Source: Oopsacas minuta
Lineage: Eukaryota > Animalia > Porifera
DNA length: 64,000 nucleotides
Direction of reading: 5' to 3'
Assembly (NCBI GenBank): GCA_024704765.1
Contig: JAKMXF010000066.1
Span: 927,883-991,882 of the forward strand
In this document: one piece after another, positions 47,601-62,533 of the stretch
How the letters are laid out: each line of letters begins with the position of its first letter
Position numbering within the stretch: position 1 is the first letter of the stretch
The notes under the pieces: model-generated
The model's database searches: none
What the model saw: only the letters and a program-made list of their open reading frames with translations
Told to the model about the DNA's origin: nothing
Made by a program: the position numbers and the translations under genes

Positions 47601-50600
47601 CGATTTCCCATTTTTGATAATTTGCTTGTCTCAATTTTATTATATTTTATACCACTTAAGCTTGTAAACATTATCCATCTTTTATTACATCTAATCAATA
47701 CACAACTTTTTGTCCGGCCTATTAACCAAAAGTAATTAAGAAACCAATATTATAATCCTATTGGTACACTATTTTATCAAATCTAATATTACATATATCG
47801 TATTTGTCATTAATTCTATTATTTGTTATATGTGATTAAGCTTGAATCAATACGAACTATTGCATTTTCCAATTACGTTTTATTACTCAGATATTTAATA
47901 TTATTTATAATGCGGGACGGAGGAAAGCACATAATATGTTAAGATTTGTATAGAGGGCCTACGAGTTGGGAATATAATATTACAATTCGAATTACTTATA
48001 TAGACTCTCATTGATTCGTGAAAAGAGAAGAGACGTTATAGGAAATGTATTCAAATCAATAGATGAACGTATAGACGGCAACCTTAATAGACATAGAATA
48101 ATACAGTTATTCACTTCATTCTACCATCATGCTGATAAGTCTACTCAAAATGCATTAGTTGATCCTAAAACATTTGGAATTTCTGAGTTTGAACAAGATA
48201 TTATTGATGAATCTATTTCCAATATAATACTGACGATTTCAGGTATTTTAATGTTATTTAGTTCATATGTTAAGATTTGAACATTATGCATTATAGATAA
48301 GGAAAATGGTAAGGACGATAATCAGATTATCGAGCAAGTTACTTCTGAGAATAATCTTACAACTGAGCTAGCTAAGACACAGAATGGTATTCTACTACCC
48401 GAAGCACTTAATCAGGATATTACTGATAGCAAACAGGAAACAGATGATATTTCAAAGGGCCAGAATGTAGATACAATACATCCTTCAGGTTAATATTTTA
48501 TTTTTTGAATTTCCTTATTTTCAAATTTACTCTACCCATTTTCCACCACGAATATCTCCGACTTAATATAAAGTCAAAAGATATACAGATCCTTATCAAG
48601 TTCACGGATAGAAATCACAGTAAGATCTTAGATGTATTACTAAATTATTTACCTAATTACACCCTAATGATGTCACTCATACTATAGGAGTTTTAACAGG
48701 ACACATTATTTCTTAATACAAATACTCCTTATAACGTCATCTCACCTAAGGATCACGTGTAATAGGGAACTTTATATGTAATTATATTATCAGAATATTA
48801 TTTGCTCGATATTGTAAACGATACCCTACGTAGATACAGGATTGTACTTTTGGTTTGATACGCCATTTCCTCTATTTATGTAACAACTAATACGTTAATG
48901 ACCCAATTAGCTCTCATTTTCAGAGGATTTGATGTTTTTAATAAATACATGTAATGCATTTCTGTTTAGTTGTATCTACACACGCATTGAGGGAGTAACA
49001 TGGACAGGGTTTCTGAGGGTTTCTGAGTGCCTTAAAGACCTTCTGAGCTTAATTTGCAGCAAAATAATGTATTACGATAATATGATATTTGAATATTTCG
49101 TGCTTATCGAGTGTAAAATCGATTCTTTCTAATATAGCAGTCATATTTTGTAAAAGCTATCATCATTGCTGACTATATTTCGCAGTATACTTGTTATAAG
49201 TATGATGACCATCATTTGACGATCATAAGGTCGGGGCCTATGCTATGCCTTGGTGAGATTTCTCATATTTAAAGCCAGATAACGCATTAATACTAACTAT
49301 TAATATCTATACAGATGTTCAAGGTAAGATTATCGTACGCATTACTAGTGGCTTCAAACACTGAATTATATCCTATTAATTACACGTGTTAATGTGTTAA
49401 TAGACACTACTGATAGATAAATCACACAACATTAATTATATAATAAGCAATGTATGATCTGTAGAATGACAGTAATATTGTCTTTCATAATAGAACAAAG
49501 CCAATTAGAAAATCTAATGATGAAAGTAGGATCAGATCTCATAGAATATCCTATTTAAATAGAGGCGAAATTGGCTCAAATTCAGTTCAAAAGAGACTAA
49601 TATATTCTTATTAACAAGATGGGAAATTGTTGCAGTCGAGCTGAAGATACGATCAAATTAGTCGCTAATGATATTGTTGTGTTGAATAACGCAGAATTCG
49701 AGTCTGGATACGATAAAAAGAGTAAACTCAAAAAGCGTGAGATCCGTAATCTCTTCACAAAGGAACACAACACTGAGAAAGACAGTGGCGTCTCTTCTGT
49801 AGACCCAGCGACAGGAGAATATCTAGAGAGCACACATGAGGAAAATAGTACAAAAAATGAACTGGGTAACAAACCAGTAGAGCAAATGGAGAATGAGGAA
49901 AGTTTAGATAAAGCTACTCCTCTTCCATTCAACGAAGTTAATCAGAATTACGGATTCAGCTCTCCAAGTCCAATTGACCCGAAAAAGACCTTTCGTATAG
50001 GCAAGCGGACAACACCATTAGCATGTCACTTCGGTATTCCAAACATAGGATCTATGTCTAGCTTTGAAAACGAATTCTCGCCCATTGTAACCGATAAAAT
50101 TTGCGTGAATGGTGAAACTTATCCATTCTTGCTATCCGATCTTATAAGTGAGGATAATTGTGATAAGCTAGGGACTGGCGGTTTTGGGGTTGTGACTAAA
50201 CTAACGCATGTACCGAGTAACGTTGTCATGGCGGTTAAACGTGTTCAAATACAGGTTGATATTGGTCTGAAGCGCGAATTAGCCGCGATGGAGGAGGGTA
50301 GAGATAAGGGGTCCCGATTCATCGTTGATTATTACGGGAGTTTAAAGCATAACGGTGAAGTATGGATGGCAATGGAGTTGATGAAAATGTCCATACATGA
50401 GATAAAATTGAAAGTCTACGAAGAGAAGAGAAGCAGCGTACCTGAAGGAATAACCTGGTATGTCTGTTACTGTATTTGTTCTGCTTTAGATTTCCTGAAA
50501 ACTGAATTACACATAATTCATCGTGACGTAAAGCCGTCTAATATGCTAGTTGGAGCGAATGGAAGCGTTAAAATATGCGATTTCGGTATTTCAGGGCCTC

Positions 50601-62533: not shown

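Follow-up and report, generated by a model that had tools for sequence, protein, structure and literature searches.

Can a gene remain a single gene when its two halves lie 13 kb apart and six complete protein-coding genes occupy the space between them? This question is raised by the window analysed here, a stretch of 64,000 nucleotides from the glass sponge Oopsacas minuta, in which an exon with homology to EFCAB5 ends at position 48488 without a stop codon, and a second reading frame that fits it in phase opens at 61504. A preliminary description, made from the sequence alone, had proposed that the two are joined and that everything between them is intron. From RNA-like contigs, related genomes and protein comparisons, we consider it very likely that the host is one EFCAB5 gene spliced at 48488|61504, and that the six guests are removed with its intron 6.

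Gene structure and evidence for the junction

Contigs of four runs from one sample (X1-X4) were placed on window positions 44500-49900. Runs X1-X3 gave DNA-like, contiguous contigs, and an X1 contig of 31.9 kb spans the donor side of intron 6 and continues past 49900. None of the runs was recorded as RNA, and X4 was classed as RNA-like by the GT..AG joints of its contigs, which delimit the first five EFCAB5 introns (Table 1). The joint 46416|48004 skips the NHL gene in intron 4, the host exons on either side of it being joined in RNA. Another X4 contig reaches 48488/9 and then carries a 27-letter overhang, CAAACCCGATGATATACACACGGATGT, whose sole match in the window is 61505-61531; because bases 48489 and 61504 are both G, and the overhang matches from 61505, the junction is placed at 48488|61504. 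The predicted join of a phase-1 exon end to an acceptor at 61503 was thus found, in one de Bruijn contig of one run and one sample, which shows that spliced reads exist and does not speak to their strand, abundance or full-length linkage.

The reading frame agrees with this junction. Exon 6 ends in ..CCT TCA G|GT TAA, so that read without splicing it would terminate in ..HPSG and a TAA codon. The acceptor AG of intron 6 occupies 61502-61503, and exon 7 follows in phase 1 after TTTCTTAG, with an in-frame stop six codons 5' of the acceptor and, as described beforehand, 220 codons without an in-frame Met. Joined together, the eight exons in the window can be read for 750 codons without a stop, with one base over.

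Table 1. Exons and introns of the EFCAB5 host gene and positions of its guest genes in the window.
Feature	Position	Strand	Basis
EFCAB5 exon 1	44695..44943	+	ATG at 44695; X4 joint 44943|45122; open frame
EFCAB5 intron 1, 178 nt, GT..AG	44944..45121	+	X4 joint
EFCAB5 exon 2, Dpy-30-like N-terminal region	45122..45354	+	X4 joints; 9fqr_Xl alignment
EFCAB5 intron 2, 295 nt, GT..AG	45355..45649	+	X4 joint
EFCAB5 exon 3, coiled coil	45650..45850	+	X4 joints; 77-79% identity with relatives
EFCAB5 intron 3, 293 nt, GT..AG	45851..46143	+	X4 joint
EFCAB5 exon 4	46144..46416	+	X4 joints
EFCAB5 intron 4, 1,587 nt, GT..AG, contains NHL gene	46417..48003	+	X4 joint
NHL-repeat gene, starts MGNRSS, in intron 4	46526..47611	-	Pfam NHL 7e-20; X4 contig 46481-47640
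EFCAB5 exon 5	48004..48242	+	X4 joints; profile match to 9fqr_Xl
EFCAB5 intron 5, 54 nt, GT..AG	48243..48296	+	X4 joint
EFCAB5 exon 6, acidic linker, phase-1 end at CAG|GTTAAT	48297..48488	+	Donor conserved in L006, L011
EFCAB5 intron 6, 13,015 nt, GT..AG, contains six genes	48489..61503	+	X4 overhang
MAP2K, MKK4/6-like, intronless	49619..50992	+	Pfam Pkinase 8e-47; PDB MKK4 7e-69; X4 contigs
MAP2K paralogue, intronless	51576..53213	-	Pfam Pkinase 8e-52
Pyridoxal kinase (PDXK), multi-exon	about 53753..55191	-	Public gene call with Phos_pyr_kin/PfkB; Pfam
MOB, intronless	55726..56370	+	Pfam Mob1_phocein 5e-72
PABP-like, RRMs, no MLLE match	56603..58342	-	Public gene call, Pfam
PABPC, RRMs and MLLE; A-rich 5' leader and TATA box to about 61211	58912..60922	-	Pfam; conserved blocks
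EFCAB5 exon 7, no Met, phase-1 acceptor TTCTTAG|G	61504..62163	+	Sequence, relatives
EFCAB5 exon 8, EGYIETE motif and first EF-hand loop, phase-1 end	62226..62429	+	Profile match; frame
EFCAB5 intron 8 (start; predicted 62430-64938, 2,509 nt), contains DZANK1, leaves window	62430..64000	+	Phase and domain continuity
DZANK1	ATG at 62609	+	Pfam Fn3_assoc, DZR, Ank

X4 also covers 48591-49681, from the first kilobase of intron 6 into the start of MAP2K(+), with a contig of depth ~162; for comparison, EFCAB5 exons have depths of ~1,400-5,000 and ordinary EFCAB5 introns 0-12. This contig might represent an extended leader of MAP2K, a transcript in its own right or pre-mRNA of the host. Contigs of X1-X3 branch into unrelated flanks at 44595-44646 and 45045-45076, which look like short dispersed repeats common to other loci.

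Conservation in related genomes

Three further genomes, probably of other glass sponges, were found through homologues of exon 7 that are 47-59% identical. An exhaustive protein search with exon 7 returned four ORF-style matches only and found no full-length EFCAB5; the 'Met' start of two exon 7 database ORFs is a GTG, an artefact of prokaryote-style calling. In all three relatives PABPC(-), exon 7, DZANK1(+) and the C-terminal exons of EFCAB5 follow one another in this order. Two of them were followed upstream (L005 with L006, and L004 with L008, L009 and L011), and both keep the two MAP2K genes, PDXK, MOB and the two PABP genes between exon 7 and exon 6, with exon 5, NHL and then exons 4 to 1 (4 and 3 in L006) lying 5' of exon 6 and the NHL gene in the same position in L006 and L011. 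The full shared order is EFCAB5 5' exons, NHL, exons 5-6, six guests, exon 7, DZANK1, the C-terminal part of EFCAB5, Arf and CK2-beta, and the orthologous intron 6 measures 14,815 and 19,064 nt in these two genomes vs 13,015 nt in O. minuta. We regard the nested arrangement as old, because at least two other related genomes share it.

Conservation extends to the splice sites themselves. The acceptor TTCTTAG|G(C/A) has the same phase-1 position in four of four species, with stops just 5' of it, and the donor reads CAG|GTTAAT or CAG|GTTATT, again in phase 1, in the three species in which it is visible.

In the L004 relative, two long contigs (L008 and L009; ctg83165 and ctg83177 of ERZ25072730) carry the whole locus at 326x and 323x with small differences, and probably represent either a pair of haplotypes or a recent duplication.

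The region between PABPC and exon 7 was compared among the same genomes. Its only conserved blocks are the A-rich leader of PABPC and a minus-strand TATAAAT; in 60923-61211, three species have in common a T-rich tract on the plus strand (the A-rich 5' leader on the strand of PABPC) and ATTTATA. Judged by its letters, the A-rich leader is reminiscent of the PABP autoregulatory element. Among 15 ATG..GT mini-exon candidates for a local start exon 5' of exon 7, none is conserved in the relatives.

Alternative explanations

Two separate genes would give the same window if the upstream one ended at ..HPSG* (TAA at 48491-48493), the downstream one had a start of its own and the joined RNA were a rare read-through or an assembly artefact. 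The TAA directly after the donor, present in O. minuta and in the species of L011, agrees with this account, exon 7 is assigned a nearby start exon (61247-61286) in public model P0001, and the junction contig is a single one; that start exon, however, lacks a conserved counterpart even in the nearest relative, exons 7 and 8 lack a Met but are conserved as protein in four species, and the phases agree, with G + GC or GA across the junction rebuilding a Gly codon in each species examined. In L006, moreover, read-through would append 40 unrelated residues, and it is implausible that a de Bruijn chimera would coincide with GT|AG to the base without a common 30-mer, so that we hold a pair of independent genes to be most improbable. 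Intrusion of foreign genes between the EFCAB5 halves through misassembly or inversion, against which the preliminary description had advised checks, has a practically negligible probability: the same order is found on independent long contigs of two other genomes, the 31.9-kb X1 contig crosses the donor side, and no points in its favour were found.

Exons 1-6 and exon 7 onward might instead be transcribed separately and joined donor-to-acceptor by intergenic trans-splicing, of which Drosophila mod(mdg4) is the model, with the C-terminal unit driven from a region in common with the PABPC promoter. Junction reads cannot tell cis from trans, and X4 depth appears, by bin arithmetic, to be near zero just past the donor at 48488. 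Leader trans-splicing has also been reported in glass sponges (PMC10282587), which implies that acceptors without an upstream donor are processed there. Against this, coding exons of separate transcripts are very seldom joined, the PABPC TATA box and leader are the sole promoter-like conserved blocks beside exon 7, the 1,587-nt NHL-holding intron of the same gene is spliced in cis-like fashion, and hosts spliced across nested genes are common in glass sponges (PMC10282587). We therefore judge trans-splicing of the two halves to be quite improbable, and retain a single EFCAB5 gene spliced across intron 6 as our reading of the locus.

Identity of the host protein

The reference for the host protein was a chain of PDB entry 9fqr (9fqr_Xl, 1,509 aa), labelled AKAP14 in the search table. 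Four EFCAB5 pieces match this one chain in collinear order: exon 2 at 150-223 (E 5.5e-11), exon 5 as a two-species profile at 380-439 (E 0.032, the top match, weak alone), exon 8 as a four-species profile at 840-899 (E 6.7e-4, weak alone, and including an F-R-x-G-x-x-E-T motif) and the last exon, beyond the window, at 1383-1480 (E 1.6e-9). The match of exon 8 bears out the earlier claim that EGYIETE and EF-hand homology resumes downstream of the intron. Precomputed Pfam annotation places EFCAB5_C (PF28481) on the downstream product in both O. minuta and L005, and papers on EFCAB5, which describe it as the RS2-RS3 bridge protein of the sperm axoneme, work from structure 9FQR (PMC12423330, PMC11779644); on account of these Pfam calls and this use of 9FQR, the chain is taken as EFCAB5. 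A GAF domain is present in a later EFCAB5 exon. Pfam searches with single EFCAB5 exons returned nothing diagnostic, EF-hand_6 staying under its cutoff, the last exon matched no family in the local Pfam copy, and neither exon 4 nor the conserved exon 7 tail gave a match in the PDB.

The sponge protein resembles mammalian EFCAB5 in its collinear N-terminal Dpy-30-like, EGYIETE/EF-hand, GAF-like and C-terminal EFCAB5_C regions. It differs in its predicted length of ~1,300 aa, compared with 1,509 aa, and in a linker (440-840) that is not alignable.

Guest genes

All six guests of intron 6 and the NHL gene of intron 4 are complete, each with its own start, stop and recognisable domains in ORF, Pfam and PDB comparisons, in agreement with the six genes first described within 48489-61503 and the seventh in intron 4. 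In the PDB search the nearest solved relatives of MAP2K(+) were MKK4 and MKK6. Guest coverage by X4 within 44500-49900 comprises NHL (46481-47640) and the start of MAP2K(+), strand and transcript ends not being visible in these contigs. The preliminary description had listed intron-containing and same-strand guests; both kinds exist, but never as the same gene, since both host-strand guests of intron 6 are intronless and every intron-containing guest is on the opposite strand.

Both MAP2K paralogues start with MGNCCS (49619-49640 and 53190-53213) and the NHL gene starts with MGNRSS (47590-47611), N-termini that look like acylation signals.

DZANK1 and public gene models

Exon 8 ends in phase 1 within the EF-hand, and the first later phase-1 acceptor from which the helix continues is at 13692 of sequence L003 (window 64938). 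DZANK1(+), which starts between these two sites, would accordingly sit in a predicted EFCAB5 intron of 2,509 nt, from 62430 to about 64938. A fusion of exon 8 to the start of DZANK1 was rejected, the phases being incompatible. If DZANK1 is counted, the host would span ~23 kb, contain eight guests and encode ~1,300 aa, a length taken from a rough splice-site-scoring model that is not reliable for the exons past 64938.

Public EFCAB5 and DZANK1 models at the locus are wrong, and at least two such models stand for EFCAB5. P0001 (335 aa, window 61247-62530) combines its unsupported first exon with a read-through past the donor of exon 8 into intron sequence, a model of 1,242 aa (L003 11373-16378) fuses DZANK1 to the C-terminal half of EFCAB5, and exons 1-6 of EFCAB5 are in neither. 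In practice the analysis yields a corrected model of EFCAB5 with eight guests, DZANK1 being the predicted one.

An EFCAB5 intron of ~658 nt past the window (L003 14667-15324, window about 65913-66570) contains a GC-rich stretch; Rfam over L003 13500-16500 gave no family at E<=0.01.

Comparison with known nested genes

The intron of human NF1 that holds EVI2A, EVI2B and OMG, and that of Drosophila dunce, are classical multi-gene nests, and like them EFCAB5 holds several complete genes inside one host intron. NF1 and dunce belong to large-intron genomes, in contrast to the compact 61-Mb genome of O. minuta. The preliminary view of a genome of '60-nt introns' was too simple: an intron of 54 nt does exist, but the other RNA-supported EFCAB5 introns besides intron 6 span 178-1,587 nt, and the mean stated in the genome paper is 341 nt, intron 6 being ~40 times this length.

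Closer parallels come from the genome of Aphrocallistes vastus, in which 2,432 nested genes (12.4%) were reported, many of them conserved (Francis et al. 2023, PMC10282587). As in that species, the EFCAB5 introns contain complete and often single-exon guests in an arrangement conserved between hexactinellids. The same paper counts 83 nested genes in the O. minuta annotation and describes a nested glassin gene shared by the two species, and its text has no occurrence of EFCAB5. The present locus differs from its cases in its EFCAB5 host, whose eight guests include six in a single intron, and in public models that are split or fused. RNA was mapped for the O. minuta annotation with a 5-kb intron cap (TopHat -I 5000), which put a 13-kb intron beyond its reach; the locus thereby shows why that annotation has 83 nested genes, compared with 2,432 in A. 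vastus. The EFCAB5 nest is a large and well-conserved example of a known architecture, and the gain is incremental. With guests on mixed strands, both intronless and spliced, it offers a conserved test case for splicing across internal poly(A) sites and acceptors in a compact genome.

Proposed mechanism

We propose that RNA polymerase II would read through the guests, which would keep promoters of their own, and that ordinary cis-splicing would then remove intron 6. On the host strand this intron contains 12 AATAAA and 5 ATTAAA signals, 15 strong acceptor-like sites and two consensus-like donors, and its true acceptor has the best pyrimidine tract among the EFCAB5 acceptors (10/12). Competing splice sites are few because the same-strand guests of intron 6 are intronless. 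The earlier view of an extreme architecture in need of a special mechanism is not supported, given this scarcity and the abundance and conservation of nested genes in glass sponges (PMC10282587).

An acceptor-like TAG, CAG or AAG lies 0-16 nt 5' of the ATG of the host and of MAP2K(+), MOB(+) and DZANK1(+), in 44690-44697, 49617-49621, 55707-55728 and 62606-62611. The host site is a TAG 2 nt 5' of the exon 1 ATG, ahead of which X4 depth is 0 in the bin 44500-44680; for MAP2K(+) and DZANK1 the AG abuts the ATG or is separated from it by 1 nt, and for MOB a TAG lies 16 nt ahead of it. As a pattern in the letters, the AG before same-strand guest starts may be a footprint of spliced-leader trans-splicing. 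The EFCAB5 pre-mRNA might then double as a polycistronic precursor from which MAP2K(+), MOB(+) and DZANK1(+) would be matured through polyadenylation and spliced-leader trans-splicing that compete with the cis-splicing of the host, a proposal that we consider unlikely, if worth stating. If true, one promoter would feed a flagellar gene together with unrelated signalling genes, and such coupling would account for the eight genes of the nest having remained together across glass sponges.
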